Made by a program: the position numbers and the translations under genes | The notes under the pieces: generated by a model | Seen by the model: only the letters and a program-made list of their open reading frames with translations | Database searches by the model: none | Told to the model about the DNA's origin: nothing | Shown here: one piece after another, positions 18,037-59,671 of the stretch | How the letters are laid out: every line of letters begins with the position of its first letter | How positions within the stretch are numbered: the stretch's first letter is position 1 | Source of the DNA: Macrostomum lignano | Taxonomy: Eukaryota | Reading direction: 5' to 3' | DNA: 64,000 nt | Assembly (NCBI GenBank): GCA_002269645.1 | Contig: NIVC01000215.1 | Span: forward strand, 372,001 to 436,000

Positions 18037-18645
18037 TAGACCGCTTAGCAAATGCTTAAATGCACGCGCAACCGCTTTTCCTGCTCTACTTATAGTAGTC
18101 TGTGTCAGACTCATTAGCACCAAATAATTATATTTTATGCTCTAAATATTAAACGATTTCTTGGAAAAAAACTAATAAAAAATAACAATTACAGGAATGC
18201 TTGACGCATTCTACAATGATTATTCTTAGCGATATTACTAATCTGGCCGGCATCTGTCTCCTTGTCATTATTTTAGTCAATATGATTATTTTTATAAAAC
18301 AAATTTGAAAGAGTGAAACAGGTTGCTTGTAGTAGTAGTAGTAGTATGTAGGGGCATTTTGTGAAGTTTTTTGTATTAAAAAGGCTTATTTCTAGGCCGT
18401 TTATATGTTTAGTGTAGGCTGTTTATATCCTCCTGGTTAGTGTGTTTATTAAGTCCAATTTTGAATATTTATATCGTATAGGGTGTTTACATCGTCAAGT
18501 TTAAGGTGTTCATATCATCCAGCTTAGAGTCCAGATTTACTGGATAAGTAGTAATGGCAGTAGTAGTAGTAGAGGCAGTAGTAATAGTAGTAGTGGCAGT
18601 AGTAGCAGTAGTAGTAGCAGTAGTAGTAGTAGTAGTAGAAGTAGC

Positions 18646-18689
<44 letters not shown>

Positions 18690-18786
18690 CAGTAGTAGTA
18701 GTAGTAGTAGTAGCAGTAGTAGTAGTAGTAGCAGCAGTAGTAGTAGTAGTAGTAGTAGTAGCAGTAGTAGTAGTAGTAGTAGTAGC

Positions 18787-18818
<32 letters not shown>

Positions 18819-18983
18819 CAGTAGTAGTAGTAGGAGTAGTAGCATTAGTAGTAGTAGTAGTAGTAGCAGTAGTAGTAGTAGTAGCAGCAGTAGTAGTAGT
18901 AGTAGTAGTAGTAGTAGCAGTAGTAGTAGTAGTAGTAGCAGTAGCAGTAGTAGTAGTAGCAGTAGTAGTAGTAGTATAGTAGC

Positions 18984-19015
<32 letters not shown>

Positions 19016-19055
19016 CAGTAGTAGTAGTAGTAGCAGCAGTAGTAGTAGTAGCAGC

Positions 19056-19093
<38 letters not shown>

Positions 19094-19094
19094 C

Positions 19095-19132
<38 letters not shown>

Positions 19133-19244
19133 CAGTAGTAGTAGTAGTAGCAGCAGTAGTAGTAGTAGCAGTAGTAGTAGTAGTAGTAGTAGTAGTAGCA
19201 GTAGTAGTAGTAGTAGTAGCAGTAGTAGTAGTAGTAGTAGTAGC

Positions 19245-19276
<32 letters not shown>

Positions 19277-19550
19277 CAGTAGTAGTAGTAGTAGCAGCAG
19301 CAGTAGTAGTAGTTGTAGTAGTAGTAGTAGTAGTAGTAGCAGTAGTAGTAGTAGTAGTAGCAGTAGTAGTAGTAGTAGCAGTAGTAGTAGTAGTAGCAGT
19401 AGTAGTAGTAGCAGTAGTAGTAGTAGTAGCAGTAGTAGTAGTAGTAGTAGTAGCAGTAGTAGTAGTAGTAGTAGCAGTAGTAGTAGTAGTAGTAGTAGCA
19501 GTAGTAGTAGTAGTAGTAGTAGTAGCAGTAGTAGTAGTAGTAGTAGTAGC

Positions 19551-19585
<35 letters not shown>

Positions 19586-21040
19586 CAGTAGTAGTAGTAG
19601 TAGCAGCAGTAGTAGTAGTAGTAGTAGTAGCAGTAGTAGTAGTAGTAGTAGTAGTAGCAGTAGTAGTAGTAGTAGTAGCAGTAGTAGTAGTAGTAGTAGT
19701 AGTAGCAGTAGTAATAGTAGTAGTAGTAGTAGTAATAGTAGTAGTAGTAGTGGCAATAGTAGCAGTAGTGGTAGTAGTCGTAGAAGTAGTAGAAGTAGTA
19801 CGAGCTAGTAGTAGTACTAGTGGTAGTAATACATGTAGTTTTAATAGCAGCAATAGTAACTCACAAGCCAATAAAAAGTAAGAGTAAACCGTACGTGCAA
19901 ACGACCATCTTCCTCAATTTCTTTAATTGAACAGCTGCCTGTTAACACAACACAGCCGTCTTCAGTTCCATAGTTTACGATTAAAAGTATACAAACTTGC
20001 AATTATATTTGACCTAACAATTTACAAACTGAAACATAATCAACTAATTTTAGAATCGAAAAATGATATTTTTTCTTTAAAGCAAACAGCATATCGATGG
20101 GTTACAAAAGCAGTAAAAATGCATTAGAAATTGGATTGCAAACTTTTATTCATAGCCTCGCGAAACGCAATTTATTAAAATATTTTCACTGACCCTAATG
20201 CACCTATAGACCTGACCCCAAAACTCCTACAGACCTGACCCCAAAACCCCTACAGACCTGACCCCAAACCCCTACAGACCTGACCCCAAACCCCTACAGA
20301 CCTGACCCCAAAACCCCTACAGGCCTGACCCCAAAACCCCTACAGACCTGACCCCAAACCCCTACAGACCTGACCACAAAACCCCTACAGACCTGACCCC
20401 AACCAATACCACTAGACCTGACCCCAAAACCCCTACAGACCTGACCCCAAAACCCCTACAGACCTGACCCCAAAAACCCTACAGACCTGAGCCCAAACCC
20501 CTACAGACCTGACCCCAAACCCCTACAGACCTGATCCCAAAACCCCTACAGACCTGAACCCAAAACCCCTACAGACCTGACCCCAAAACCCCTACAGACC
20601 TGACCCCAAAACCCCTACAGACCTGACCCCAAACCCCTACAGACCTGACCACAAAACCCCTACAGACCTGACCCCAACCAATACCACTAGACCTGACCCC
20701 AAAACCCCTACAGACCTGACCCCAAAACCCCTACAGACTTGACCCTAAAACCCCTACAGACCTGACCCCAAAACCCCTACAGACCTGACCCCAAAACCCC
20801 TACAGACCTGACCCCAAAACCCCTACAGACCTGACCCCAAAACCCCTACAGACTTGACCCCAAAACCCCTACAGACCTGACCCCAAAACCCCTACAGACC
20901 TGACCTCAACCCCCTGATCAGCTCAAGCTGATCACACAGCACTACAATTCAAATGCAAAAAGCGCAGAAAGGCACCCGTTTGCTGCCGTCAGCACTCAGC
21001 AGAGCCACTCTGCAACAGTCAATACAAGCGCACATGGTCT
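18037..21040. repeat. Direct duplication copy B (3004 bp) flanking the retrotransposon 3' end
   Basis: Starts TAGACCGCTTAGCAAATGC and ends AATACAAGCGCACATGGTCT, as does 26940-29904. Unique parts are near-identical. It includes a (GTA)n tract (about 18550-19870), a 22-23 bp array (about 20205-20915) and the last 30 codons of SNAPC3. Confidence 0.95.
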
Positions 21041-35900: not shown

Positions 35901-36875
35901 TTTGGGAAGAAATGGGATTTTACAATGGAATTTGGGAAGAAATGGGATTTTACAATGGAATTTGGGAAGAAATGGGACTTTACAATGGTATTTGAGAAGA
36001 AATGGGATTTTACAATGGAATTTGGGAAGAAATGGGATTTTACAATGGGATTTGGGAAGAAAATGGGACTTAACAATGGGATTTGGGAAGAAATGGGACT
36101 CTACAATGGGATTTGGGAAGAAAATGGAACTCTACAATGGGATTTGGGAAGAAATGGGACTCTACAATGGGATTTGGGAAGAAATGGGACTTTATAATGG
36201 GATTTGAGAAACGGGATTCGACATGGAAGGGGATTTTATTCTACAATGGGATTGAGGATGAGATGGGATTTTTACGGTGGGACGAGAAATGGGAAGAAAT
36301 TATGGCTCTTCACCCAATAATACATGTACATGCAATATTTGCGAGCACCCTGGAGCAAAGCCTTTGGCGACCTCGTCACACAACCAGCTAGCGGTGAGGC
36401 AGTTCTGCCCATTCCACAGACTCCTTAGCACATACAAGCGCCCCAATACTGTACGCAGGCACGAGCTCACACCGGGTGTAGTTTAATTTGGGAAGTAGAG
36501 ACTTTAGACTGAGCAGAGACGGAAACAGTGATGAAGCATAGATCCAGTCTCACCCGTCAGGGGGGCATGGTTACTAGCGTCATCACCCTCGGCAGCGGCA
36601 TCGAGCAGGTCCCGCCTGACGGCATCCGGGTTGCACTCGGCAGCCAGGGCAGTCACGTCAACGTCGGGAAATTCTCGAGTCAGCTCCGTGAGCAGCTGAG
36701 ATTGCACAGCCGCTTCAGCTGTCGCCGTTGCAGTCTCCGTCGCCGTAGACGAAGTGGTTGAATCTGGAAACACCTCAGAGGCGGCATTCTGCATAGCCAA
36801 TAGTAGTTGACGAAGGTTCAACCAATCGGAATGAGGATGAATTGAGGTTTCGTCCTGAGGCTTAGTGTCAGACAT
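29813..36875 (-). CDS. SNAPC3: snRNA-activating protein complex subunit 3 (SNAP50/Pbp49), about 433 aa, 3 exons
   Basis: Exons 36875-36554, 34773-34352 and 30370-29813 with matching phases. Motifs ILLQGRHTLADLKDQICC, VYTSSMFHI, LRLGELYLYQHAANCEHIIVFSDV, CQLC and CIDC parallel the SNAP50 family pattern (LG.PYLY.H.G.CEH plus C-terminal zinc fingers). Confidence 0.9.
30395..30660 (+). repeat. GGCGATT-core tandem repeat next to the SNAPC3 exon 3 acceptor; same family as 32290-32920
   Basis: Alternating GGCGATTCTCAGGGTGGTTTA and GCGATTGCTAAAGACATTTAGA units. Confidence 0.8.
30910..31108 (-). mobile_element. tRNA-derived SINE with CORE-like domain, copy 2
   Basis: The minus strand shows A-box TAGCCTAGTGG, B-box GGTTCGATTCC, the same CORE-like block, and the same AGTCCTTGG(G/A)CTGAACAGCCGTA(C/T)GCAGCCTTC tail as copy 1. 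Confidence 0.8.
31400..31920 (-). CDS. C-type lectin domain (C-terminal half) plus degenerate PAN/apple-like domain; terminal exon or gene fragment nested in SNAPC3 intron 2
   Basis: LWYGSMPSSNGNQDCV...LVDQRC...FACE matches the CTLD pattern; ECLMAA...RSVLYNKALGQCRL is PAN-like. There is a TTTTCAG acceptor ending at 31921; upstream exons were not found. Confidence 0.65.
32290..32920 (+). repeat. 23-bp minisatellite (GGCGATTCTCAGGATGGTTTGAA)n
   Basis: About 27 tandem copies in SNAPC3 intron 2. Confidence 0.92.
33200..34075 (+). repeat. 151-bp tandem repeat, about 5-6 copies
   Basis: CACCAG(G/T)TGACTATGGACA recurs at 33453, 33604, 33755 and 33906 (period 151), with degenerate outer copies. Confidence 0.92.
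34830..36300 (+). repeat. 30-bp minisatellite (GGATTCTACAATGGAATTTGGGAAGAAATG)n in SNAPC3 intron 1
   Basis: About 47 tandem copies; explains the KKWDSTMEFG-type ORFs. Confidence 0.95.
36345..36480 (-). mobile_element. Degenerate antisense fragment of the 50990-51351 SINE
   Basis: CTGCCCATTCC..ACTCC..AGCAC..ACAAGCGC..CAATACTG matches the reverse complement of 51190-51320. Confidence 0.6.
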
Positions 36876-37049
36876 TGTTGCGTTGAGATTGATACAGTTC
36901 TTCTTTGCATGAAATATTGTAAATGCAAAATAAATATTGAACATATTTAGGAATTACAAAGACAAATTACTGTTGCGCATTCTTTGGGACTTCTTAGAAT
37001 GGTTTGGTTCGTATGTACATTTGGGTTGGGTAGGGTATTATATGTACAT

Positions 37050-37290
37050 AGGAGTAGAGATAGAATTGGCCTTAAGTGTATACATTGGGGTAGGGATAGG
37101 GTTGGCCTCGAGTGTACATCGGGGTAGGGATGGGGTTGGCCTCGACTGTACATTAGGTAGCGATGGATGAGTGTACATCGGGGTAGGGATGGGGTTGGCC
37201 TCGACTGTACATTAGGTAGCGATGGATGAGTGTACATCGGGGTAAGGATGGGGTTGGCTTCGACTGTACATTCGGGTAGCGATGGGGTGG
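37050..37290 (+). repeat. 59-bp tandem repeat between SNAPC4 and SNAPC3
   Basis: GTGTACATCGGGGTA recurs at 37112, 37171 and 37230; its core is shared with the 43670-44150 array. Confidence 0.85.
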
Positions 37291-38020: not shown

Positions 38021-39558
38021 TTAGGAGTCAATAGCAGCTTCATCTTTTTGATCAGCGTCATGTCCAGCGGCAGCAGCCTCAGACTGTGGCAGCAGGCAAG
38101 ACTGAGGCCGATAGCCCATAGCAACCAGTTGCAACAGTTCGCTAGGCACAGTAATCAATTCACCGTTGCCAAGAGCAACGTTAACTAATGAATCTAATCG
38201 ATAATCTCCAACAACGCATTCGGTTTTGAATTGTTGCAGGTCTTTAGCTGTTAATCGTTTGCGGTTCAACTGATTTGGGCTCAGCTCCTGCTGCAGTTGA
38301 TTCTTCTTTTCTCTTCGAAGTCGCCGTTCGCTCATTTTGCCGACGCAACGCGCGTGAGACGAGTTGGCCGGCACCAAGTGTTTGGGTTTGGGCAGCAGGA
38401 AATGCCGCGGATCAAGTAGGGAGCGCATGCTGCTGACCGCGACGCCGCGGGAGGCGTTGCCGCCGCCGCCGCGGTTCAACTCGGACCGGTCGGCTCGGGC
38501 AGTCAAATGCGACGCAGGCCGATGCTCAACCAGCTGTTGTTGTCGAGTTTCGCTAGCCGCGACATCGTCGTCAAACGATTCTAATTGCAGCTCCTCTTGG
38601 CTGAGAAAGTCCGGAGCTCGAGCCCGACAATCGGCGAAGCTCATGCCGGACAGCACAGCTGGCCAAGCGAATAGCCGGTGAAACTTGTCGCCTAATTCTT
38701 GCCAGCCCCTGTCAACATCGTTGTCGTCGTCGTCACCTGCGTCTATCGACTGTCGGAGCAGCCGCTCGCGACTGCTCAACAGGCGCCGAAACGCCGACGC
38801 TGTTGACATATTTAACGGCATCGGCGGCGCGTCGGTGTCGGCCAGATAGACGCGGAAGAATTCCGACACTCGCTGGGCGCAGTTGCGACGCCGTTTTAGC
38901 AGGTCGCCGCCCGACGAATCGCCGAGAATGCGACAGACAGGCGGCAGGCGGTAGCGACGAACTGGCAGGTCGAGTAGGCGAGTTTTTGTTGCCAGGCGGC
39001 TGGCTATTCGATTAGCTAGAGCTCGCTTGGCGACAGCGTCAGGCGTGTCGTCCTTCGGAGCATCGATCAATTCTGCGGCGGTGACGTCACCGTCTTCTTC
39101 GACATCGTTGTCGTCGTCTACCAGCATGGTGACGTCATCCGTCTCTTTTTCAACAAATGCGCTATCAGAAACGTCATCGTCGGCGTCCAAATCGACGTTT
39201 GGCTCGACGGCGGGGTCAGGTCGGTGTCGCTTCTTCGGTCGAGTCGATTCGTCGCCCTCGAAAGTCGCTGAGGCCGTTGCTGCCGTTAAGCGCCGTTTTT
39301 TAGCGGCCTGCGCCGATTTTAAAGACGCTGGCAAGGTCGGCGGCGGCTCCTTTGGCGCTGCTGTGGACGTCAAGGCCACATCGGGATGGGCGGCGTTAGT
39401 TGCGGCCCCGGACGACTGCTTGGATGGCGATGAGGCGAGCGACTGCAAAGGAAGCAGATTATGATAGGGTGCACGTTTTTTCCACTGATTGCTTACCTAA
39501 GGCAGACAAAGCAGTGCGGGCCTGACACTAAGACAGACACTGAGACAGACAGACACTA

Positions 39559-39645
<87 letters not shown>

Positions 39646-39692
39646 TAGACAGACACTAAGACAGACAGACAGACAGACAGACAGACACAGAC

Positions 39693-39743
<51 letters not shown>

Positions 39744-39842
39744 CTAAGACAGACAGACAGACAGACAGACAGACACTAAGACAGACAGACAGACAGACAG
39801 ACAGACACTAAGACAGACAGACAGACGGACAGACAGACACTA

Positions 39843-39895
<53 letters not shown>

Positions 39896-42800
39896 CTAAG
39901 ACAGACACTAAGACAGACAGCCAGATTCCAAGCTAATTAAACAAAAGAGCCTCACCAGAATGGACTGAACAATCTGGGGCACCATAGCCCTGTACTGGCG
40001 CACGGTTTTGCACCGATCGAAGCGAGTTTTCAGCTGCGGAGCCTCCATAGCCGTCTGCAAAGTGAGCCACAGTCGGTCCTCAGACTCCGGCAGCAGTAGT
40101 TCGCGCAAGCGCAGTCGAGTTGCCTCGTCGAAATTTTGCCGATTTACCGACTGCGTCAAAGCGGAAACAATCGGCCGCCACAGGGCCGCCTTCGCAGTGG
40201 CGTCTCGTCGGAGTTTTTCAAGTTTGAAACGACTGTTGGTGACCTTGCCGGGCAGAGGGCGCGGCAGGAGAAAGCCTTCGTCAGCGTCCATAAGAAGCTG
40301 CGGGTGTTGTTCAGAACAGCCAGTAAAGAATGTGCAGTGTTTTTCTTCCTAGGTGTACACTATTTATGGTTGTAGTGGTAAGGTACTGCCTGATAACTCT
40401 GTGCCCCAGATGTGCATTATCGGGGGGTTGTGGGGGAAAGGGGTTTGACTGATAACTCTCTGCCCCAGATGTGCATTATCGGGGGGTTGTGGGGGAAAGG
40501 GGTCTGACTGATAACTCTCTGCCCCAGATGTGCATTATCGGGGGTTGTGGGGGGAAGGGGTCTCGCTGATAACTCTCTGCCCCAGATGTGCATTATCGGG
40601 GGTTGTGGGGGGAAGGGGTCTCGCTGATAACTCTCTGCCCCAGATGTGCATTATCGGGGGTGTAGGGGGGAAGGGGTCTCGCTGATAACTCTCTGCCCCA
40701 GATGTGCATTATCGGGGGTTGTGGGGGGAAGGGGTCTCGCTGATAACTCTCTGCCCTAGATGTGCATTATCGGGGGTTGTGGGGGGAAGGGGTCTCGCTG
40801 ATAACTCTCTGCCCCAGATGTGCATTATCGGGGGTGTAGGGGGGAGGCGTCTGGCTGAAAATTCCTAGCTCCCCTAAGTAACAGACCAACCTGCGACAGC
40901 TCCTCCTTTGACGCAGCAGTTGGCTCCTGTTTTAATGTAGCTGCCACCTGCTGCTGCTGTTGGTCCCCTCCACTTCCGCCAGAGTTGCAGTCGAGAAAGC
41001 CGCCACTAGCCAGCAGTTTAGCCATCAACGGCGTCCTTAGCAACAATCGCCGAGTGTCATCGCCAACTCCAACAGAGGCTTTGACGCGTTCCCACACTAG
41101 GCTAGACAGCACCAGCTGGCGCCAACGCCAGGCTAAACCGGGCGCGCTTCTACCGGGAAACATTGACAATAAATCAGTCCAGCAGATATTATAAACTTGA
41201 AGATCGATAAATTTTTGTACCGCCAATCGTATCGATTTTTGACTATGACCCTGGGCAATGTTCCGCTTGACGAGGTCTTGCAGACTGGTTGGCTGCGGCA
41301 CCAGCAGGAAGAGGCGGCGGTCGTCTGCGTAGCTCCAAGGCGGCTGGTCTCGGGTGAGCAAGTGATCCACGGCTTTGCGGCAGGCCAGGTCGGTGCTGCG
41401 CAGTGTCAGAAGGGGGGGGGGTAATGAGAGGCTTGGCGTGCGGGTCAGGGGAGAGGGAGATGGGGAAGAGCGAGATGGGGAGGAATAGGGAGAGGGAGAA
41501 GGAGAGGGGTGTTGATGGGGAGAGGGAGAGTAGGGAGAGAGACAAGGGAGAGGGAGACAAGAAAGATGAAGAGAAGGGAGAGGGATAGAAGGAGGGATAA
41601 AGGAGGAGAGATAGAAGGAGGGATAAAGGAGGAGGGATAGGAGGGATAAAGGAGGAGGGATATGAGGGATAAAGGAGGGATAGGAGGAGGGATAAAGGAG
41701 GAGGGATTGGAAGAGGAGAAATAGATGGAGGAGGAGGGAGACAAGGGAGAGGGAGAGGAGAGGGAGACGGAGGGAGATGGGGGAGGGAAGAGTGTAAATC
41801 GGGGATGTGGTACAAAGAGAGAAGTGACAGGTGATGGAGTACAATTGCGGGCACATTAACAAACGATAAGTTATAAACAGAGCCTCAGAATAGAAAATGC
41901 AGTCAAACGATCTGGCAAAATTAAAGAGTAAAAATTCAATTTAAGAAACACCCATAACCATGCCCAGCCGACTCACCGAGTGCCGACGTATTGAGCAATT
42001 CGAAAAAATCGAAACGGCCCGAACTGGTCAACTGCCATCAACAGTCGCAGCCGATCGCTAGCAGGCCAATCATAACCCAAATCTGGAGCCAATGAGCGCC
42101 ACAGCTCTGATGCAGCTCGATGCGATTTCGGGTACAGCTTGAGTTGCATCGACACCTGACGCCAGTCAATTCTGCCGGTGGCCTGGATGAATGGAAGCAG
42201 AATCTTTCTACACTGAGTGACCTAAGTCTGTTATTTGGAGGGTTCTATTGCGGGGGCGTCAGAGGCTCCAGCACCAGAGGCGCCAGCACCAGAGGCGCCA
42301 GCACCAGAGGCGCCAGCACCAGAGGCGCCAGCACCAGAGGCGCCAGCACCAGAGGCGCCAGCACCAGAGGCGCCAGCACCAGAGGCGCCAGCACCAGAGG
42401 CGCCAGCACCAGAGGCGCCAGCACCAGAGGCGCCAGCACCAGAGGCGCCAGCACCAGAGGCGCCAGCACCAGAGGCGCCAGCACCAGAGGCGCCAGCACC
42501 AGAGGCGCCAGCACCAGAGGCGCCAGCACCAGAGGCGCCAGCACCAGAGGCGCCAGCACCATGGACATCCCATCTTGTCCCGCACTGCACACAAAACCGC
42601 ACCTGAGTAGCAATGGACTCGTTAACAGCGGACACCACAGACGCCGCGGCCACCGTCTCACTGCTGGCTTCGGCCGGCGCTGGCAACTGCTGCTCCTGAA
42701 TGCGCGACCTGCGATGCCGGGACAGCCAGCGTTGGGCGCAGGCCAGCGGAGGTCGCACCTTGCCCTGGGATGAACTCAGTGCCGCTGACACGGCGCCCCA

Positions 42801-45199
42801 GTTGCGTTCGCCCAGCTCATCAACCAGAGCGATTAGACGAGCATCCTCTGCACGTTTCCATGCCGACCTGGTTGATGGGTGGATTGAGTTATTAGCAGCG
42901 ATTTTTGACGGATTTTAAGGATTTTTAATTGGACATTGGTGACTTAGGACTAGGGATTAGCAATCAGGGACTACAGATTAGCGATTAGGGACAATGGATT
43001 AGCGACTAAGGACAATGTATTAGCGATTAGGAACTAGGGATTAGTGGTTAGGGACAAGGGATTAGTGATTAGTGACTAGAGATTAGTGCTAAGGGTGTAG
43101 TGATTAGTGATTAGGCAGTCAGTCAAATGAATCACTCACGAGTCAATGCCAGGCCTGAGCACATTGGCGTACGCCAGTCTCAAACTCCGAGCGGTGAGCT
43201 GCACAATGCCGGTGCTTGGTCTCTGCCCTTCTAAGTCCGACAATACCGCGTCGAAATTGATGAGGCCAGCACCGCCACTTGGTCCTTCGGCAGCCAGTCT
43301 GCCCAGCAACTGATCTGTGCTAGAATTTTGCAATCGTTTAATCTCCGAGTCCAGCTCGGCCGCGGCTATTCGAGTGGACTTAATGGCCGACGATACAGCG
43401 GCCGAGCTGCGCATCCGTTCGGCCAGTCCGGCCTGACGGGACAGCAGAGGCCGGAGTCGAGTCTCCCGATAAAATTCTGCCACTAATTGCAGAAGTTTTT
43501 TCAGACATCCCTGCCTGTTTGACAGACTGGAAACTTTGCCGGTGTACAGCGCCGAGCTGCCAGCAAAGGTGGCCAGATTGGCCAGACACAGCTCCGCCCG
43601 GTTGCGCTTTTGAAGGCCGTCAGCGTTTGGCGGGCAAACAATTCTGGGTGTGCGGTGGCGAGCGGGGAGGCCAAGTGTACATTGGGAAAGGGGTAAGATT
43701 TTTTAAAGCTAGTGTACATTGGGGGTGGAGATTTATTGAAGCTAGTGTACATTCAGAGTAGAGATTTTTTGAAGCTAGTGTACATTGGGGTAAGAGATTT
43801 TTTAAGCTAGTGTACTTGGGATAGAGATTTTTTAAGCAAGTGTACATTGGGGGTAGAGATCTTTAAAGCTAGTGTACGTTGGGGGTAGAGATTTTTCAGC
43901 TAACGTACATTGAGGGTAGAGATTGTTTGAAGCTAGTGTACATTGAGGGTAGAGATTGTTTGAAGCTAGTGTACATTGGGGGTAGAGATTTTTAAAGCTA
44001 GTGCACATAGGAGGCGTAGAGATTTTTTAAAGCTAGTATACATTGGGGGTGATTTTTAAAAGCTAGTGCACATTGGAGGCGTAGAGATTTTTTAAAGCTA
44101 GTGTACATTGGGGGTAGAGATTTTTTAAGGCTAGTGTACACTGATAGTGTACATTAGGGATAGAGATTCTTTAAGGTTCACCAACCTTGAGTTTCCTGAA
44201 TCGTAGACGGAGAAAAACGGCGACCTAATCAGACCCCGTCTGGCCAGTCGCAGCTGCGGCAGCCGGCCGCCACCCAGCAGCATCGAAGCTGAGGCCGCCC
44301 CGGCAGCAGCTTCGTGATCGTCGCTAGCGGCTACACCCGGTGCTCCAGCACCATAGCCCAGCGACAGCATCAACTGACAGCTGGTGCCAACGTCCCCGAG
44401 TTTCTCGGCGTCGCCTTCCAACGCCGACTTGCCTGCGGCCACTTCGCTGATGCGAGATTCTACTCGGCGAAGGCACTCGGCAACGAGCTCCTAGGAGGTT
44501 GAAAATATGGAAGATATGGAGGATACTATCGCGGGATATTAATTCCCCCTACAATGGGATAAAAGTTCCCTCTACAATGGGATAGTGATTCCCCCTACAG
44601 TGGGATAATAATTCCCCTACGATGGGATAATGATTCACTCTACCATGGGATAGTGATTTCCCCTACTATCGGATAAGAATTCACCCCTCTAATGGGATAA
44701 TGAAATGATCCCCCCTATAATAGTATAATGATTCCCCTCTACAATGGGACAATGATCCACCACAATGGAATAATGATTCCCCCTACAATGAAATTATTTC
44801 CTACAATTGGAGAATGATTCCCCTTACAATGGGATGATGATTCCCCCTAAAATTGGATAATGATTCCCCTACAATGAGATAATAATTATGCTACACTGGG
44901 GCAATGATTCTCCCACAAAGAGCTAATGTCTTCACACCATGAAACACGAATTGCTGTCATACACATACCTGCAAAGTCTGATTGATAACCAGCACAGTCT
45001 CAGCATCGCAGGGAATTTCCCCATCCTCGGCATTGCGCAAAGCAATCAACAGGCTGGAGGCTTTGAAGTCAACCTCATCTTCTGGATTGTCAAAATATTC
45101 CTCTGGATTTTGATTGCCACTGTCTATGGCATTATTGCCTTCTATTGGTGCAGCCTTCTCACACTTGGCTGTGACCAAGTGATTTTCAGGGTTGATGTC
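38021..45199 (-). CDS. SNAPC4: snRNA-activating protein complex subunit 4 (SNAP190/Pbp95), multi-Myb protein, about 1272 codons over 8 exons; no in-frame ATG in the first exon
   Basis: Exons 45199-44969, 44490-44186, 43643-43140, 42867-42603, 42221-41977, 41395-40891, 40297-39956 and 39442-38021, all phase-consistent. N-terminal motifs [17 protein letters not shown]...CPPNAD and [15 protein letters not shown] parallel SNAP190. These are followed by serial Myb repeats ([10 protein letters not shown]...NWGAV...CAQRW; [18 protein letters not shown]...GTRTDLACR; [10 protein letters not shown]...[12 protein letters not shown]...WRW) and basic NLS-like KKRR clusters. Confidence 0.87.
39530..39920 (+). 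repeat. (GACA)n microsatellite in the last SNAPC4 intron
   Basis: Read directly. Confidence 0.95.
40385..40845 (+). repeat. 58-59 bp G-rich tandem repeat in a SNAPC4 intron
   Basis: CTGATAACTCTCTGCCCCAGATGTGCATTATCGGGGG... about 8 copies. Confidence 0.92.
42270..42560 (+). repeat. 15-bp minisatellite (GCACCAGAGGCGCCA)n in a SNAPC4 intron
   Basis: About 19 perfect copies between donor 42602 and acceptor 42222. Confidence 0.95.
43670..44150 (+). repeat. About 32-bp minisatellite (AAGCTAGTGTACATTGGGGGTAGAGATTTTTT)n in a SNAPC4 intron
   Basis: About 14 degenerate copies. Confidence 0.88.
44530..44905 (+). repeat. 23-bp minisatellite (GATTCCCCCTACAATGGGATAAT)n in the first SNAPC4 intron
   Basis: About 16 degenerate copies; shares the CTACAATGGGAT core with the 30-bp array. 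Confidence 0.85.
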
Positions 45200-48100
45200 C
45201 TGCAGTTATTTTTGATACATATTGGATCATTTAGTTTCTAATTAGGACATACCAAGACATTTTTTCTGCCTTACATTGACAATGTTTTGCTACACCAGAA
45301 TAGAGCAATGCAGGTACATAAAATTTAAGAACATAAGCTAACTTTTTGATGCACACCTTTTTAAACAAGAATCAAGTCACCAGACCCCCAGAGTGTGACA
45401 CTTCTGCCAAATCAACAATCAACAATTCTGCCAAAAGAACAGATTTTTTCTATAAGTGCTAGTGTATTTACAATGTATCCTTCTGTGCCAAATAGCAGTG
45501 TCTTAGTATAGCCTCAAGATACCCAACTGCAAAATTTTTTCCAATATCACTAAATAAGCATCAATGATTGGAAAACCTAAATTATTGTAAATATTTAGTT
45601 AATCTCTTAAGCATTCATTCATCAGATGGCAGAATTATGGGTATCCAAAGAAGATTTTACCATTAAATTCATGTATACATAATAGTTTTATAACTATATA
45701 ATAGAGGCTATAGTACTTTAATGCTAATATATAGAGATGGGAAAAAAAAGAAACAAAAAGTCTATTAGTCAAAGGCTAAGCAATAAATATTAGAAAATTT
45801 AAATAAATTCATATAAAGATATAAATATTCATTTAAATCAAATATACAATATATATAGTATATATATTTCTATAAAACAAGCCAATTAATACAATTTCTA
45901 TTAGTATCAATATAATTATCATACAAATAGGAAGTCCAAAAAATTCCTTTTTTATTATGAACTTAAAACTTAATATAAATATTATTATTAAGTAAAGTCC
46001 CAATTTAAAGATGGAATATTTAAGTGAGTGATTATTCAGTTTTCATAGTTAATGATAGCATAAAAAAACATGTTGCCAATTATGAGTTAGATAGGTCACT
46101 ATAAAAATTATAAATATAAGGTTTAAACTTTTAAATGTTAGCTTGCCAAACATTTTTAGAGCCAAATAAAATTCAAATCATAGGACATAGCTACAACCTG
46201 CAAGCTGAGATGAAAAGAAGAGAATGAATAGGTCTAAAGACAAAGGGAAAGATAAGAGATAATAAAAGAAAAATATGTAGAAAATAGGGGTTAGACAATA
46301 TACATTTTTGAGATTTATGCTTTCAAGGTAATTGAGATTTGATAGAGATTAAAGATTAAGCCAAATTAGTATCTAATAGGCCTATGTTGCTATCTAGCAA
46401 TAGAATATATTCTATCTAGCAATACTAATATTAGGCCTATTATTTGTTAAATATATATGCCTCCTGTCTATAATGATAAGCCTAATAATAAAAGGAAAAT
46501 CAACTTATATAATATTGAGCTTATTGCTATGTCAGTAACTTGGTGTATATCAAATATAAATATAATAATATTGTAGTCACCAATAGTTATATAGTCACAA
46601 ATATTGACTTTTTTAGATCTTAAAACTGAGATCAAGATTGAAAAAGTGCTTAGATCTTGACAATCAAGATCAATATCTTGTTTGACCTTTAGTGAGAAAA
46701 GAGACATGGTCATGAGAGGATTTATAAATTATAATAAAATAATGTTTGGGTTTTTTGCTGGCAACAAGATGCAAAAGGCTACAGGTCAGAAGACAATAGA
46801 TCAAAAAGGTGATCCTAGTCAAAAGGGCAATAGTCACAAAGATAATTAGTCAAAAAGGCGACAGGTAGTAGATTTATTGAAATTATAAGTTCCGTGCATT
46901 AGAAGCTTATATTGGTTAAAATTTACAAGTAGTAAATTGTTAAATTTTATTTGTTATATTTGTTGAAAGCATAAGCAGTTAAAATGTATTTGACTTGTAT
47001 TTATTGAGATGTATTTGTTAAAATGTGGTTAAGTGAGGTCTATTTATTTTACTAACTGCCTTCAGTAGATCATCCACTGAGTGTAAAGGGCAGCTTTCTT
47101 TAATTTAGATGTAGTAACCATTTAGCACTTGTATGGTCTTATGAGAGTAATGAATTAAATAAAATCCCACTAAACTAACCATGTTTTTATGTACATTAAT
47201 GTACATATATATGCAGAATACCAACATGTACAATTCTAATACATCAAACTATTGTATATTTTAACAAATACATATACAAGTACAAATAGGCCTACATAAA
47301 CAAATACAAGTCTAATACCTTATTGCCCTTATGACTGTGGCCCTTTTGATCTGTCGCCTTTTGATTGGTTCCTGATGCAAAATTGCATTCAAGACCATAA
47401 GGTCCAATTTCAAGATGTTATTTGGAAAGTCAATTCTAAATGCACTTCCTAGTACAGCTGGGGCTTGGACTTGTTGGGCCCACAGTCTCCTGCGCTACCA
47501 GGTAGAACCGATTGGATAGGGGCCAGGTCAAGCAAACCTGCAGACTTGCGAAGACAACCTTTCAGCCATCCTCGCCTGTTGCACTCACGCCGCTGCTGGA
47601 TACGCTGGTGGAGACTTCCGGTAGAGACATCCCTCAGACCCTGGATGAAATTCTTGCAGAAAAATCACAACGCATTATGCAATTGCGCGAAAAAATGCAA
47701 TTTTGCGTCAAAAAATCCAGAAAAAATGTGTTGCAGAATTTCAGACAAAATTGCTAATTTTTAATATATGCAAAAGTGCGCTTGAGATATTGGATTTTGC
47801 AAAAAAGATAATCCTACTAGCTAAGATCACAAAGAAAAAAAGAATAAAAACTAAAAACTGAAAAAGGCACAAAAGTAAAAATTTGAAAAAATTCCATAAA
47901 AGTAGAAACTTGTAACATTTGATATCTAACATATATATTTAAATGAAAATTCAAATCACTACATTTTCTTAGAATGCATTTTTGTTATTGTCTTATTGAT
48001 TACTTTTAGGCCCTACCATTTTGCGACGTGCTAAGTACCAAAATAAAAAATGCAACCAATAAAAAGTATTTTGCGTGCCATAAAAAAATTGCATAATTCC

Positions 48101-49954
48101 ATTTGACTTAAGAAATACAAGAATTCCATCCTGGGCTCGGACCAAGCAAGGGGATAAGACTTCCTGAGGGCGATGGCCCAGAGACACACTTTCTGACTGC
48201 TCCCCCCTTTCTGGCTACTGCATGGCTGGCAGGAGCAGTACCTTATTGTTCTTGTTGTTGTTGGAAAGTCAGGATATTATAGGGCCTATAGCATTCCTAT
48301 AGCATAAAAATAAGCCTGGTTTTTTCACTGGAGACTGGTAGGTACTAAGATGCAAAATCGCATTCAAGGTCTAATTCTAGGATGCGATTTTGAAAGTCAG
48401 GATGCTATAGCTATGAACTAATAGCATCATAGCTATCATAGCTAGCATCTTAGCTATAGCATCATATGCTATAATGCTATAAACCTATAATTATAAAGAT
48501 AAAAGGATAGACAATAGTAAAGGAGATGAGATAAGAGGAGAGAGGAGAGCGAAGAGAAATGAGCTGAGAGGAGATAAAAACTTGAACCAGCAAGCAAGCT
48601 GGATTGCTACGCCTATTGTTACATTGTAAACTTTTAAATCATTAAGAGGGTCGCAGCGGATGGAGATTTTGCGGGCGGGCTGGCTGCTGGCCCGCTGGTG
48701 ACTAGCGTTCGTTTGCCGAGCCCCGGTTTAAACTTAAGCATCATTCAAGTGTTTTCAGCTTTCCAAAGCTTTTACCCCTTACCCATAGGCATAGCTTAAT
48801 CTGACTGAAACTCAAACAAGAAGCGAGCAAGAACAACTCCGGCTAAAACAGAACTGTTCTTAGAAAAACTGCAGGTTAAGGGTCATTTAAGTTTTCTATA
48901 AAGTTTTAACAAATAGACTAAAGAAAACAACTTTCTTAGGTTTTAAAGTTAACTTTAACTACAAGGTGTTTTTGCAAAAGAGCTATTAGTCGCATAAATA
49001 TAATTTATAAGATTTTTCGATGACTGCGAAAAATCTTAGGTACCGTTTCAGTTTTCCTCGCATTCCAAGAACAGGTTGACTAATCTATAAACATCGTGTG
49101 GGATTTACCCTATTGATTCTTACATTGTGCTATTCAGTTAGCGACTAATTTTGTATTGAACCAGTAAACACTAATTACTTTTTTAAATTGAAAGGGTTCA
49201 GTTGTGTCTAATTGTATTTGAAGTAATTTCTAGTTTTTACTTGATATATATTATGCATGTATCAAACTCGAGAGCAGATGGCTTCCATCAAGACTTCAGA
49301 CTCAGGGCCTAGAAACAGAATATTTTGAGTAGTCATTTACTGTATGTTATAAAATTTCTGCCAAATTTCATTATTATGTTATGCTTCATAAAAATTTTAT
49401 GTGATTTGACTATAGCTTAGTTTTTAGTTTATTTTTAAAATTATACCAAAATTTAGAAAGAAAAAAAAACTAAATTGGCAATATCATAATTTTCTGACCA
49501 AATAAGTAAACCATATATTTTTTGCTGGTTTAGTCCAATCAACCATTCTGGTTTCTTTTCAACAACATAAATAGTTTAAATTCATTTGTGTCACAACCAC
49601 TTCACATGGCAATAAATATTTTGTTTTGTATATTAGCCATGCTTTAAAACTTCTTAGACTTTTGGTTCCATTAAGATGGTCTGTGCATTAGGGCGTAAAT
49701 AATAAAATGTTTTAACTATTATGCACTTTAAAACAAAAGCTCCATAAAAGATATGCTAAGGCCAAACAGATCCAAAATATGAGTACAAAAGGTTTCCTAT
49801 GAAAAGACAGAGCTACTATTTAAAAAGTAATTAAAATACACTGCATGTCATCCCTAGTCATCTAACAAATAAGGAAAATTCAAAGTTCAAATGAGGTTTC
49901 TAAATGAAAAATCAATTTGAATTAGTTTAAATTCAATGTGCTCAGACTTAGTTG

Positions 49955-52037: not shown

Positions 52038-52474
52038 CTGGGAGTAGACTTATTTTCCCTATTTGAGCTGGGCTGACTTTTAATTCCCTAAATCTATGGT
52101 GGCAATAGAAAACTAATCTACAGTATAGCTTACAGATAACTTATTTTGGCAAGACTTTCTTGCTTCGTTTGGAATATAATATAAAATATAAGCTGGATTT
52201 TGCCTACTGCAGAAGCTGCTACTGCGTTAGTCAGTTGGACTCAACTTAAATAAAGTCTTTGCCAATTAGTCAGTGCGTTCAATGGGAATCGCTTGCCTAG
52301 GGGGAAAACTTAGTATGATATTATATTATGCTTTTGTCTATGGCCGAATGGTGCGAATGTCTCACACAGCATATGGAAACATCTTTCTTCAACTTGATAA
52401 TTTAAATTAATTTGCAAAAGTACATGAGAATATTCTAGAACTATATTACAGTATATATTTTGTAACTAATGAAC

Positions 52475-53075
<601 letters not shown>

Positions 53076-53163
53076 GCCTGCCTGTCACCTATCAATACTT
53101 CACCCTATTCCCACTAAAAGCCGATTTGCAGGCCCCAGCACCGCCGCCAGCACACCAACTCGC

Positions 53164-56100
53164 ATGGGCAGTCGTTACTCGCACCTGCCAGCAGCTCCGG
53201 CCAGCCTGCAGAGCCGCTACTTCTGTCTGACATTCCGAGCGCCAGACAGGATCAGCCTGATCGCCAGCAGCCAGGACACTCTGGAACTGATTCGGTCAGC
53301 CATTGCTGAAGCCTACAAACCCGGCATCCGGTTTGAATACGACGACCACGGCTCGTGGAGCATCATCCTGGCCGGCTGTCCGTTCAAAATTGGTTCCAGT
53401 CGAAGCGAGGCAATCGCTGGCAAACTGGCTGGCATTGCAATTCTGCGCAGGTTGCTCAGCAGAGGCTGGCGAGCCGTTGTGAGCTCCGATCTCTGCCGGT
53501 CAAACGATTTAGGCACCTGGTTCTTTTCCCGAACTGAACCAGGTGTAGACTTTGCCGATGAGAGCGACAGAACCAGCTCCATCTGCTGCTTGGCCTTGTC
53601 AAGCAGCGATCGACTCCAGCTGATCGGTTTCCCGGCCAGTTTAACACCCAGAGTAGTCGAGCGCATCCGTCAGGAGTGGAGCTGCGGTGTGCAGCGCGGA
53701 CCCGAGGCTGTGTGCAATGGACAGGCTGTGGAATTGAAATTGCACGGCAATCCATGGTTAGCAACTAACTTATTGTGGAGCTGATGTGTCCGATTTCAGT
53801 TTAGATAAAGTACAGATGGATTAGGGCAGCAGTGTGAGATGAGGGTTCTTGCTGTGTGACAGTTGAGAGTCCCAGCTGTGTGACACTACGAGCTAGAGAG
53901 TCCAAGCTGTGTGACAGTAGAGAGTCCCAGCTGTGTGACACTACGAGCTAGAGAGTCCAAGCTGTGTGACAGTTGAGAGTCCCAGCTGTGTGACACTAGA
54001 GAGTCTCAGCTGTGTGACACTAGAGAGTCTCAGCTGTGTGACACTAGAGAGTCCTAGCTGTGTGACACTAGAGAGTCCTAGCTGTGTGACACTAGAGAGT
54101 CCCAGCTGTGTGACAGTTGAGAGTCCCAGCTGTGTGACACTAGAGAGTCCTAGCTGTGTGACACTAGAGAGTCCCAACTGTGTGACAGTTGAGAGTCCCA
54201 GCTGTGTGACAGTTGAGAGTCCCAGCTGTGTGACACTAGAGAGTCCTAGCTGTGTGACACTAGAGAGTCTCAGCTGTGTGACACTAGAGAGTCCCAGCTG
54301 TGTGACACTAGAGAGTCCCAGCTGTGTGACACTAGAGAGTCCCAGCTGTGTGACACTAGAGAGTCCTAGCTGTGTGACACTAGAGAGCCCAGCTGTGTGA
54401 CACTAGAGAGTCCTAGCTGTGTGACACTAGAGAGTCCCAGCTGTGTGACAGTTGAGAGTCCCAGCTGTGTGACACTAGAGAGTCCCACTGTGTGACACTA
54501 GAGAGTCCCAGCTGTGTGACACTAGAGAGTCCCAGCTGTGTGACACTAGAGAGTCCCAGCTGTGTGACACTAGAGAGTCCTAGCTGTGTGACACTAGAGA
54601 GTCCCAGCTGTGTGACACTAGAGAGTCCCAGCTGTGTGACACTAGAGAGTCCCAGCTGTGTGACACTAGAGAGTCCCAGCTGTGTGACACTAGAGAGTCC
54701 CAGCTGTGTGACACTAGAGAGTCCCAGCTGTGTGACACTAGAGAGTCCCAGCTGTGTGACACTAGAGAGTCCCAGCTGTGTGACACTAGAGAGTCCCAGC
54801 TGTGTGACAGTTGAGAGTCCCAGCTGTGTGACATTTGAGAGAGTTCCAGCTGTGTGACACTAGAGAGTCCCAGCTGTGTGACACTAGAGAGCCCCAGCTG
54901 TGTGACAGTTGAGAGTCCCAGCTGTGTGACAGTTGAGAGTCCTAGCTGTGTGACACTAGAGAGTCCTAGCTGTGTGACACTAGAGAGCCCCAGCTGTGTG
55001 ACAGTTGAGAGTCCCAGCTGTGTGACACTAGAGAGTCCTAGCTGTGTGACACTAGAGAGTCCTAGCTGTGTGACACTAGAGAGTCCTAGCTGTGTGACAC
55101 TAGAGAGTCCCAGCTGTGTGACACTAGAGAGTCCCAGCTGTGTGACAGTTGAGAGTCCCAGCTGTGTGACACTAGAGAGTCCCAGCTGTGTGACACTAGA
55201 GAGTCCTAGCTGTGTGACACTAGAGAGTCCCAGCTGTGTGACACTAGAGAGTCCCAGCTGTGTGACACTAGAGAGTCCCAGCTGTGTGACACTAGAGAGT
55301 CCCAGCTGTGTGACACTAGAGAGTCCCAGCTGTGTGACAGTTGAGAGTCCCAGCTGTGTGACAGTTGAGAGTCGTAGCTGTGTGACATTTGAGAGAGTTC
55401 CAGCTGTGTGACACTAGAGAGTCCCAGCTGTGTGACACTAGAGAGCCCCAGCTGTGTGACAGTTGAGAGTCCCAGCTGTGTGACAGTTGAGAGTCCCAGC
55501 TGTGTGACACTAGAGAGTCCTAGCTGTGTGACACTAGAGAGCCCCAGCTGTGTGACAGTTGAGAGTCCCAGCTGTGTGACACTAGAGAGTCCTAGCTGTG
55601 TGACACTAGAGAGTCCCAGCTGTGTGACACTAGAGAGTCCTAGCTGTGTGACACTAGAGAGTCCCAGCTGTGTGACACTAGAGAGTCCCAGCTGTGTGAC
55701 ACTAGAGAGTCTCAGCTGTGTGACACTAGAGAGTCCTAGCTGTGTGACACTAGAGAGTCCCAGCTGTGTGACAGTTGAGAGTCCCAGCTGTGTGACACTA
55801 GAGAGTCCCAGCTGTGTGACACTAGAGAGCCCCAGCTGTGTGACAGTTGAGAGTCCCAGCTGTGTGACACTAGAGAGTCCCAGCTGTGTGACACTAGAGA
55901 GTCCTAGCTGTGTGACACTAGAGAGTCCTAGCTGTGTGACACTAGAGAGTCCCAGCTGTGTGACACTAGAGAGTCCCAGCTGTGTGACAGTTGAGAGTCC
56001 TAGCTGTGTGACACTAGAGAGTCCCAGCTGTGTGACACTAGAGAGTCCCAGCTGTGTGACACTAGAGAGTCCCAGCTGTGTGACACTAGAGAGTCCCAGC

Positions 56101-59100
56101 TGTGTGACACTAGAGAGTCCCAGCTGTGTGACACTAGAGAGTCCCAGCTGTGTGACACTAGAGAGTCCCAGCTGTGTGACAGTTGAGAGTCCCAGCTGTG
56201 TGACATTTGAGAGAGTTCCAGCTGTGTGACATTTGAGAGAGTTCCAGCTGTGTGACATTTGAGAGAGTTCCAGCTGTGTGACAGTTGAGACTCCCAGCTG
56301 TGTGACAGTTGAGAGTCCCAGCTGTGTGACAGTTGAGAGTCCAAGCTGTGTGACATTTGAGAGAGTTCCAGCTGTGTGACAGTTGAGAGTCCCAGCTGTG
56401 TGACACTAGAGAGTTCCAGCTGTGTGAGACTAGAGAGTCCTAGCTGTGTGAGACTAGAGAGTCTCAGCTGTGTGGCACTAGAGAGTCCTAGTTATGTGAC
56501 ACTAGAGAGTCCCAGCTGTGTGACAGTTGAGAGTCCCAGCCGTGTGACACTAGAGAGTCCCAGCTGTGTGACACTAGAGAGTCCCAGTTGTGTGACACTA
56601 GAGAGTCCCAGCTGTGTGACACTAGAGAGTCCTAGCTGTGTGACACTAGAGAGTCCCAGCTGTGTGACACTAGAGAGTCCCAGCTGTGTGACACTAGAGA
56701 GTCCTAGCTGTGTGACACTAGAGAGTCCCAGCTGTGTGACACTAGAGAGTTCCAGCTGTGTGACACTAGAGAGTCCTAGCTGTGTGACTATATAGCCAGC
56801 CATCTTACTCAGATCCTCAACCTAACCACTAAATTTCAAGGCTGGCTTCCGAGCAGGAAGCGGTGGAGGCCCGGCAAATGCTTCTTGCCATTGTTCGCGA
56901 GATGCACAGGTGGGGTTGCCGGCTGTACCTGTCTAGCAGTCTGAAGGATACAACCGACAGTTTGTTTTTTCTGTGCCCACGGCGACTCAAGCCGCCAGTT
57001 GAGCAGCTGCAGGCTACCGAGATGTTCGTGCTCAGCCTCAACAGGCGTGATCGGTTGAGACTGATGGGCACTTCGGAGCAGTCAGAGGTTGAAGACAAAG
57101 ACTGCAACCAACTGATGGACGTCATTAGAGAGTGTGTGCTAAACTACTGGCCTAAGGGTGAGTCTACGATCAATATTGATTTGAATATTTATTTAATTAT
57201 TTTGTTTAAATACTTTGTCTAGAAGATCAGATTTTAATTGGCTGAAAAAGTTATGTAAATTTTAGAAAGATTAATTGGGTTGGGCGATATTCTCATATGC
57301 GATCTTATACATCATCTCATAGGAGATTTCAGATCTCATAGTTAATCTTATAGCCAACCTGATTGGAAATCTTACAGGTGATCTCATAGCAAATCTCACA
57401 GGTGGTCTCATAGCAAATCTCATAGCAAATCTCACAGGTGGTCTCATAGCAAATCTCACAGATGGTCTCATAGCAAGTCTCATAGCAAATCTCACAGGTG
57501 GTCTCATAGCAAATCTCACGGGTGGTCTCATAGCAAATCTCACAGGTGGTCTCATAGCAAATCTCACGGGTGGTCTCATAGCAAATCTCATAGCAAATCT
57601 CACAGGTGGTCTCATAGCAAATCAAACGCACTAACGCCGCAGGGCTCCGTCAAGAGCGCGACTGGTACGGAGCTCGAGAACTGCACCTGACCGGCTCGCC
57701 CTGGTGGACCGAAGGCTCCGACTCGGTGCACAGCCGCCTTCTGATCACCCTGCTGCTGCAGCGACTTCGCCAAATCGGCTGGCGAGTTGTCGAAACTGTC
57801 GACGTTTGTCGCCGACTGAGCGACAAGTCGATTCTGCTGTTCGAGAGGTCGCCGCCCAGATCGACGCTACACTGCTGCATATCGTTGAACGGCACCTCCT
57901 TGTTGCGGTTCATCAACGCTCCGGAGGATGTCGTATCGGCGATGCAGCAGGTTGTGTCCGACAACTATGCCAGGGGAATTAAAAGCGAGAAGATTTACGC
58001 CGGCTATCATCAGGTAACCGTTTCTGTAACTGTCTGTAATGGTTTCTGTAATTGTCTGTAATGGTTTCTGTAATTGTCTGTAATGGTTTCTGTAATTGTC
58101 TGTAATGGTTTCTGTAACTCTCTGTAATGGTTTCTGTAACTGTCTGTAATGGTTTCTGTAACTGTCTGTAATGGTTTCTGTAATTGTCTGTAATGGTTTC
58201 TGTAATTGTCTGTAATGGTTTCTGTAATTGTCTGTAATGGTTTCTGTAATTGTCTGTAATGGTTTCTGTAATTGTCTGTCATGGCTTCTGTAATTGTCTG
58301 TAATGGTTTCTGTAATTGTCTGTAATGGTTTCTGTAATTGTCTGTCATGGCTTCTGTAATTGTCTGTAATGGTTTCTGTAATTGTCTGTAATGGTTTCTG
58401 TAATTGTGTGTAATGGTTTCTGTAATTGTCTGTAATGGTTTCTGTAATTGTGTGTAATGGTTTCTGTAATTGTCTGTAATGGTTTCTGTAATTGTCTGTA
58501 ATGGTTTCTGTAATTGTGTGTAATGGTTTCTGTAATTGTCTGTAATGGTTTCTGTAATTGTGTGTAATGGTTTCTGTAATTGTCTGTAATGGTTTCTGTA
58601 ACTGTCTGTCATGGTTTCTGTAATTGTCTGTATTGGCTTCTGTAATTGTCTGTAATTGTTTCTGTAATTGTCTGTAATGGTTTCTGTAATTGTGTGTAAT
58701 GGTTTCTGTAATTGTCTGTAATGGTTTCTGTAATTGTCTGTAATGGTTTCTGTAATTGTCTGTATTGGTTTCTGTATTTGTCTGTAATGGTTTCTGTAAT
58801 TGTCTGTAATGGTTTCTGTAATTGTCTGTAATGGTTTCTGTAATTGTCTGTATTGGTTTCTGTAATTGTCTGTATTGGTTTCTGTAATTGTCTGTATTGG
58901 TTTCTGTATTTGTCTGTAATGGTTTCTGTAATTGTCTGTAATGGTTTCTGTAATTGTCTGTAATGGTTTCTGTAATTGTCTGTATTGGTTTCTGTAATTG
59001 TCTGTAATGGTTTTTGTAATTGTCTAATGGTTTCTGTAATTGTCTGTAATAGTTTCTGTAATTGTGTGTAATGGTTTCTGTAATTGTCTGTAATGGTTTT

Positions 59101-59671
59101 TCTAATTATCTGTAAACGTTTCTGTAATTGTCTGTAATGGTTTCTGTAATTGTCTGTAATGGTTTCTGTAATTGTCTGTATTGGTTTTTGTAATTGTCTG
59201 TAATGGTTTCTGTAATTGTCTGTAATAGTTTCTGTAATTGTGTGCAATGGTTTCTGTAATTGTCTGTAATGGTTTTTGTAATTATCTGTAAACGTTTCTG
59301 TAATTTTTCGTAATCCTTTCTGTAATTGTCTTCAATCGCCTCTGTAATCGTCTGTTACCATGTCTGTAATTGTCTGTAATATTCTGTAACCGTCACTTCA
59401 CCTCTCTCACTCGCTTCTCGCCACCCGGCAGATTCACCTCCGAGGGCAGCCCTGGTCGGCCTTCAGCGGCAACGATCACATGCTCGGCCGACACCTCATG
59501 CTGGCCGTGCTCAGCGCCATGCGCCAGGACCTCGGCTGGTCTCTGGTCTGCTCTGCCGACGTGTCCGCAAAGTACCATCACTCGGACAGCGGGCAGGACT
59601 ATCCACTGGACGTTCACAGCTGGTGGTTTGCTGCACCTGCGGCCAGCTTGGGGAATAACTGCGTTGGTTAG
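53164..59671 (+). CDS. Uncharacterised protein built from four ~120-aa internal repeats, about 506 aa, 4 exons (a further 5' exon is possible)
   Basis: Exons 53164-53756, 56841-57157, 57643-58013 and 59432-59671 are phase-consistent. Recurring motifs are DR(I/L)xL, (W/Y)xxG(I/V/L), LxGxP(W/F), GWxxxxSxD and (W/L)(F/W)F, ending in [10 protein letters not shown]. An acceptor at 53131 precedes the ATG. Confidence 0.85.
53850..56790 (+). repeat. 24-bp minisatellite (GAGAGTCCCAGCTGTGTGACACTA)n, about 2.9 kb
   Basis: About 120 copies filling intron 1 of the repeat-protein gene. Confidence 0.97.
57320..57620 (+). repeat. 24-bp minisatellite (CTCATAGCAAATCTCACAGGTGGT)n
   Basis: About 12 copies in intron 2. 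Confidence 0.9.
58015..59390 (+). repeat. 22-bp minisatellite (TAATGGTTTCTGTAATTGTCTG)n, a dimer of 11-mers
   Basis: About 60 copies, beginning at the donor GT of intron 3. Confidence 0.95.

Follow-up and report, generated by a model that had tools for sequence, protein, structure and literature searches.

The SNAPC4 gene of Macrostomum lignano, a free-living flatworm, very probably has no start codon of its own: judging from the sequence, its transcript would be joined by trans-splicing to a short spliced leader, and the AUG at the end of that leader would serve as the initiator. The gene lies within a 64,000-nucleotide (nt) stretch of contig NIVC01000215.1 (GenBank assembly GCA_002269645.1, positions 372,001 to 436,000 of the forward strand), called the window here, and all positions given below are those of the window. 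SNAPC4 encodes the largest subunit of SNAPc, a transcription factor for small nuclear RNAs, and SNAPC3 encodes another subunit of that complex. SNAPC4, its neighbor SNAPC3, and a gene for a CK1-like kinase all lie on the minus strand. The predicted site of leader addition is the acceptor that immediately precedes position 45199, the first base of the first SNAPC4 exon.

The minus strand at this site reads ...aaaaa TAA CTG CAG and then GAC ATC AAC CCT GAA AAT, where the GAC opens exon 1 (unspliced acceptor, AATAACTGCAGGACATC; exon start, GACATCAAC). The CTGCAG acceptor (45200–45205) is the same in the two homeologous copies of the locus, L001 and L003, and matches [T/C]TNCAG, the top motif at M. 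lignano trans-splice acceptors (PMC8629364). Just ahead of the acceptor, 9 nt 5′ of exon 1, is an in-frame TAA (45206–45208), and the frame upstream of the exon reads ...NMYQK*LQ. Exon 1 itself (44969–45199; 231 nt, 77 codons) begins DINPEN, ends at the donor CAG|gtatgt, and encodes no methionine. The sole nearby in-frame ATG upstream, at 45220, reads ATG TAT CAA AAA TAA and is closed by the stop at 45208–45206. Because that TAA closes the frame, unspliced RNA has no usable in-frame start. The first genome-encoded in-frame ATG (44370–44368) lies in exon 2 (44186–44490, ELVAECLRR...); it is codon 119 of the model that begins with the leader methionine, hereafter Met119. The 65 residues that precede a conserved 12-residue motif in exon 1 include 16 D/E and 4 K/R. 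GC content is 46% in exon 1 versus 26% in the 1 kb upstream. The whole coding region (Mlig029422.g1) extends over 38021–45199 and specifies 1258–1259 amino acids, comprising Myb repeats and a C-terminal region. The sequence-only reading that preceded this analysis had placed the exon start at 45199, in phase 0 behind CTGCAG and beginning GAC ATC AAC, with a TAA just upstream, no in-frame ATG before the conserved motif, and about 65 residues ahead of it. Direct reading of the strand agrees with that description throughout.

M. lignano possesses a single 35-nt spliced leader, CGGTCTCTTACTGCGAAGACTCAATTTATTGCATG, that ends in ATG (PMC8629364), as the sequence-only reading had expected of a flatworm leader. 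Between 30 and 39% of M. lignano genes are trans-spliced (PMC8629364; PMC5730564), and one figure legend refers to the terminal ATG of the Macrostomum leader as a “translation start codon” (PMC10468722). When the leader, exon 1, and exon 2 are joined in a modeled mRNA, the leader AUG (nt 33–35) is the first AUG, is in frame, and is followed by G at +4. The modeled mRNA translates as MDINPEN... and stays open through exons 1 and 2, with no stop after the leader AUG, in the frame that had been predicted from placing the leader AUG before GAC. An in-frame leader AUG is, taken alone, a one-in-three event, and hence no evidence by itself. Weight comes, rather, from the frame as read in the DNA, which is open from the acceptor to the conserved motif, combined with there being no available genomic ATG. 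A cis-encoded, leader-like exon was also considered and is excluded: the 3′ half of the leader has no match anywhere in the window at up to three mismatches. An Rfam scan of the whole window returned no family and hence no leader RNA or small nuclear RNA (snRNA) gene.

We propose the following sequence of events. Transcription of the SNAPC4 pre-mRNA would begin at some point within the AT-rich upstream region, and the pre-mRNA would be trans-spliced at CTGCAG to the 35-nt leader, with the predicted junction placing the leader end, ATTTATTGCATG, before the exon start, GACATCAACCC / GACATCAACCCTGAAAATC. The AUG that ends the leader would fall in frame with GAC ATC AAC and yield M-D-I-N-P-E-N.... 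The mature mRNA would carry a 5′ untranslated region (UTR) of 32 nt, all of it leader, and the leader methionine would be the initiator of full-length SNAPC4. Without trans-splicing, the frame would be closed by the TAA, and the only alternative would be Met119, whose use would remove the conserved N-terminal motif. Leader-bearing reads would be expected to map at 45199, and ribosomes would be expected to start at the leader AUG.

Public gene models provide an indirect link between this acceptor and the leader. A protein search with the assembled exons retrieves a M. lignano hypothetical protein, BOX15_Mlig017142g2, labeled partial, with a full-length match of 95% identity; the same protein cluster contains Mlig017142g1 and Mlig029422g1, both likewise labeled partial. 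Across 27,176 nt, the Mlig029422g1 locus (NIVC01000215.1) matches the window at 100% identity, which makes the window part of the Mlig_3_7 assembly. All three homeologous GenBank SNAPC4 coding sequences are 5′-partial and begin 0–3 nt after the acceptor. Specifically, PAA83365.1 and PAA61182.1 start DINPEN, with the coding sequence opening at the first base after the acceptor AG, and PAA87835.1, the window's copy, starts INPEN, 3 nt beyond the acceptor. In the pipeline behind these models, TBONE set transcript ends at peaks of leader-containing reads and TransDecoder called the open reading frames (ORFs) (PMC5730564). TransDecoder labels an ORF 5′-partial only where its frame runs open as far as the 5′ end of the transcript. 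Since a TAA stands at −9, the 5′-partial label means that the acceptor has to be where the transcript models start. The logic of the annotation thus appears to constitute indirect but fairly specific evidence for leader reads at 45199. A protein search with the 178-residue N-terminus alone gave no match, which reflects a word-index limit, since the full-length query did find the GenBank proteins. The supplements of three M. lignano papers contain no entry for the gene identifiers or for SNAPC4, and a full-text literature search found no paper naming SNAPC4 or the M. lignano gene identifiers.

Several points weigh against the proposal. The case for a leader joined at 45199 depends on the way in which the public annotation was made. 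In the window's copy the annotated SNAPC4 start misses the acceptor by 3 nt, and at SNAPC3 the annotated starts of the copies are 6 nt apart; from these two offsets it follows that annotated 5′ ends are not base-exact and can shift by a few bases. No obvious polypyrimidine tract precedes the acceptor at 45205–45200. With a T at −3, the leader AUG sits in a weak context that could allow some leaky scanning. In parasitic flatworms, one acceptor often serves both cis- and trans-splicing (PMC12582326). Finally, no sharp change in conservation among the homeologs marks the acceptor: identity is about 96% across the 400 nt upstream and about 99% within intron 1. This last point neither helps nor hurts, because the copies are too similar, with intron 1 as well conserved as the exon, for homeolog conservation to be informative as a marker of exon boundaries. 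L001 and L003 hardly differ from one another, whereas their intergenic DNA shares about 93% identity with that of the window, and the duplication structure of the M. lignano genome is already known (PMC8629364). Intron 1 (44540–44900) is full of a minisatellite of about 23 nt, with GGGGAATCATTATCCCATTGTAG-like units whose copy number varies among the homeologs. In a later SNAPC4 intron (42260–42560), an 18-nt unit (GGTGCTGGCGCCTCT...) is repeated perfectly about 17 times and stays open in all frames; the array could pass for coding sequence, and the GenBank models splice it out.

The jitter of 3–6 nt in annotated 5′ ends between copies could fit an exon start that is an ordinary transcription start, or the end of a truncated model, with initiation at a non-AUG codon, or else a gene in decay. 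We regard this group of explanations as highly improbable. In all three copies the model ends lie right after an AG that fits the acceptor motif, unlike a coverage drop-off; the neighboring SNAPC3 gene has the same kind of 5′ end; and all three copies keep an open frame of 1258–1263 codons.

The sharing of acceptors in flatworms bears on another explanation, namely that an upstream genomic exon carrying an ATG is cis-spliced to this same acceptor and was missed since the public transcript was cut at the leader peak. The space available for such an exon is the presumed outron and intergenic region between SNAPC4 and its upstream neighbor, the CK1-like kinase gene, which has its own ATG and ends at a TGA (49957–49955). 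This region (45200–49954, minus strand; 4755 nt) is AT-rich and contains no sequence resembling a spliced leader and no Rfam family. It was scanned for ATG-initiated open strings that end in phase 0 at a GT, with GT[AG]AG taken as the consensus donor and first-order Markov simulations of the region providing the chance level. The scan found 71 phase-0 strings, compared with 56 ± 12 in the simulations. A single string has a consensus donor (mean 1.3 simulated, with at least one present in 66% of simulations). That string, MSLPEVSTSVSSSG|GTGAGT at 47630–47589, is the one positive candidate for a first exon in the window's copy, and we reject it: the segment around it is missing in the other two homeologs, its count is at the chance level, and no GenBank model uses it. 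L001 and L003 have their own single consensus-donor candidate elsewhere, which is absent from the window. The 19 candidates common to the homeologs were likewise rejected, with donors that agree with the consensus at no more than 6 of 9 positions and translations that are AT-rich nonsense. The segment that carries the rejected consensus-donor string, a stretch of about 0.8 kb from 48257 to about 47432, contains GC-rich islands and has no counterpart in L001 or L003; an insertion or the remains of a repeat would be the probable origin.

As scanned, then, the 4.75-kb upstream region contains no credible ATG exon, in keeping with the by-eye impression of the sequence-only reading, which had covered only the nearest few hundred bases and had called for a wider search. 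An upstream exon is likewise absent from all three GenBank models. The N-terminus that would be supplied by the leader methionine, moreover, already matches in length that of a homolog with a genomic methionine, described below. Together, these considerations make a missed cis-spliced exon very unlikely, and initiation at the leader AUG remains the preferred explanation.

The length comparison depends on what the protein is. Judged from its sequence matches, it is SNAPC4-like. Pfam Myb matches above the cut-off (PF00249, PF13921) fall on the first repeat, the only repeat that passes the thresholds. The best match in the PDB is human SNAPC4 (7xur_A, E = 1.4e-4), in an alignment that covers 7xur_A residues 293–459; c-Myb is next (E = 1.6e-4). 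A local alignment of 28 N-terminal residues to human residues 91–122 (PKDKTLPEDPETCLQLNMVYQEVIQEKL) is weak, at 1.3 bits on its own; the aligned motif lies upstream of Met119, and the subunit-binding motif of the human protein spans residues of about 84–133. When the first 398 residues of M. lignano SNAPC4 were used as the query, an exhaustive HMMER search returned mostly Myb-only matches and one N-terminal homolog, P0018, a 793-residue ORF on a Logan contig from run DRR639838. BLASTP gives 1e-11 for P0018 over residues 23–203, the two proteins clearly share the N-terminal motif, and a bird protein named SNPC4 also matches P0018. This bird match, the N-terminal alignment, and the overall architecture lend some support to a SNAPC4 identity. 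On its contig (L004; stretch considered, 820–1100), P0018 is an intron-free ORF of 793 codons, and its ATG is encoded in the genome, 17 nt behind a ttttacag. If a leader were joined there, its AUG would be out of frame with the P0018 ATG.

Distances from the methionine agree between the two proteins. FKASSLL starts at residue 44 in P0018 and at residue 46 in the leader-methionine model, and INxTLQE starts at residues 69 and 73, respectively. Because these distances match those of a homolog with a genome-encoded methionine, the leader methionine together with exon 1 already seems to supply a full-length N-terminus, and no coding sequence seems to be missing. The earlier suggestion that the N-terminal length is close to that expected thus finds a match in P0018. 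Human SNAPC4 (7XUR chain A) and Caenorhabditis elegans SNPC-4 have in common with the M. lignano protein a Myb-repeat core, apparently an N-terminal ETxLxxN motif, and a long, poorly conserved C-terminal part. Human SNAPC4 differs in that its motif is preceded by about 34 additional residues and it has an ATG of its own, and the M. lignano protein is very divergent (E = 1.4e-4). In M. lignano, moreover, the SNAPC3 gene (PF12251) adjoins SNAPC4.

The N-terminal motif also bears on whether the leader AUG is the main start. The mRNA could be trans-spliced as proposed, with ribosomes initiating mainly at Met119 (44370) and producing a truncated SNAPC4. Such a protein corresponds to UniProt A0A1I8ILG4, a UniProt/WormBase-type model from an ATG-requiring gene predictor that picked Met119, and the leader AUG, with its weak T at −3, would lie 32 nt from an unusual cap. 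The A0A1I8ILG4 protein is without the conserved N-terminal motif, and its cluster is named “Reverse transcriptase domain-containing protein”; both that start and the cluster name look like artifacts of automatic prediction. Five out-of-frame ATGs intervene between the leader AUG and Met119 in the modeled mRNA (45006–45132; at 45132, 45078, 45033, 45024, and 45006), all in frame +1, with ORFs of 2–31 codons. Scanning ribosomes would have to skip all five, one of which sits in a strong context (GAGGATGG), and initiation at Met119 should be inefficient as a consequence. Truncation would also discard the motif FKASSLL...ETxLxIN.TLQE, which is clear in P0018 and aligns weakly with human SNAPC4. Furthermore, the 118 codons upstream of Met119 are open in all three copies, with only two amino-acid changes in exon 1. 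We therefore judge a main start at Met119 to be very unlikely and favor the leader AUG.

Initiation at a leader AUG is not new to flatworms. It has been documented there since 2006 (Cheng, Cohen, Ndegwa and Davis, J Biol Chem, as cited in PMC9851317 and PMC12582326). As relayed in the same two papers, Cheng et al. found the leader AUG in frame in 28% of the Schistosoma mansoni transcripts that are trans-spliced, and over 40 Schistosoma cDNAs require it; in these accounts, all reported flatworm leaders end in AUG. The mRNAs described as “slORFs” (Song et al. 2023, PMC9851317) resemble the SNAPC4 case in having a leader that ends in AUG, an in-frame ORF without a genomic start, and a 5′ UTR made entirely of leader. 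The SNAPC4 case differs from those known flatworm mRNAs in that M. lignano is a free-living macrostomid and the case is predicted from sequence. Nematode and trypanosome trans-splicing likewise removes an outron, adds a short, uniform leader, and resolves operons; unlike the flatworm leader, however, nematode and trypanosome leaders do not end in AUG and so, as a standard, donate no initiator codon. To our knowledge, no individual gene dependent on a leader AUG has been described in a macrostomid. SNAPC4 is thus one more gene governed by a mechanism already known in flatworms, and it overturns nothing in current understanding.

SNAPC4 is followed head-to-tail, on the same strand, by SNAPC3 (PF12251) in all three homeologs, and both genes have acceptor-type 5′ ends. 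At the SNAPC3 5′ end (36873–36902, minus strand), the exon can start at 36902 or at 36899, depending on which of the acceptors in aaAG|AAG|AAC is used; the two starts lie 27 and 24 nt, respectively, upstream of the gene's own ATG (36875–36873), in frame and with no stop between. These two acceptors had been put forward earlier as in frame with that ATG, and they are. The GenBank SNAPC3 coding sequence of the window's copy is 5′-partial and starts at 36899 (NCINLNATMSDTK, NCINLNATM...); in the other two homeologs the annotated start is 6 nt earlier (KKNCINLNATM...). At SNAPC3, too, a leader AUG would be in frame and would add 9–10 residues before the gene's own ATG, so that SNAPC3 may have two possible starts.

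The distance from the SNAPC4 stop to the SNAPC3 acceptor is 1,121 nt, including a 246-nt tandem repeat (37043–37288). For M. lignano, operons have been defined by a repeat-adjusted distance of 1 kb (PMC8629364), and the SNAPC4–SNAPC3 gap falls within that limit. The two genes may thus form one operon that is resolved by the same leader. Elsewhere in the window, an open frame resembling a retrotransposon gag-pol occupies 3–1601 on the minus strand, and several kb of micro- and minisatellite arrays lie between genes, some of them open in all six frames (18500–19900, 52440–53100, 53940–56800, and 57270–59330).

The identity of the gene lends its start codon an added interest. In trypanosomatids, SNAPc drives transcription of the leader RNA gene (PMC5829719). 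The hypothesis suggested by this parallel is a closed positive loop in which SNAPC4 would be made only from leader-bearing mRNA, the leader RNA gene, of the Sm-class snRNA type, would depend on SNAPc, and SNAPC4 and SNAPC3 would possibly form one leader-resolved operon. In C. elegans, SNPC-4 occupies the spliced leader RNA genes. We put the loop forward tentatively, as an analogy with other systems that we consider possible but rather doubtful for M. lignano.

For annotation, the consequence is that predictors that require an ATG mis-call genes of this kind. GenBank leaves the SNAPC4 proteins “partial,” and a leader methionine would complete them. M. lignano has working transgenesis, which makes SNAPC4 a convenient gene with which to test, in vivo and in a flatworm that is free-living, whether a leader AUG initiates translation. 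Should the loop exist, the supply of leader would directly gate the output of SNAPc: translation of the very factor that probably drives transcription of the leader RNA gene would require the leader, a feedback hypothesis that can be tested.

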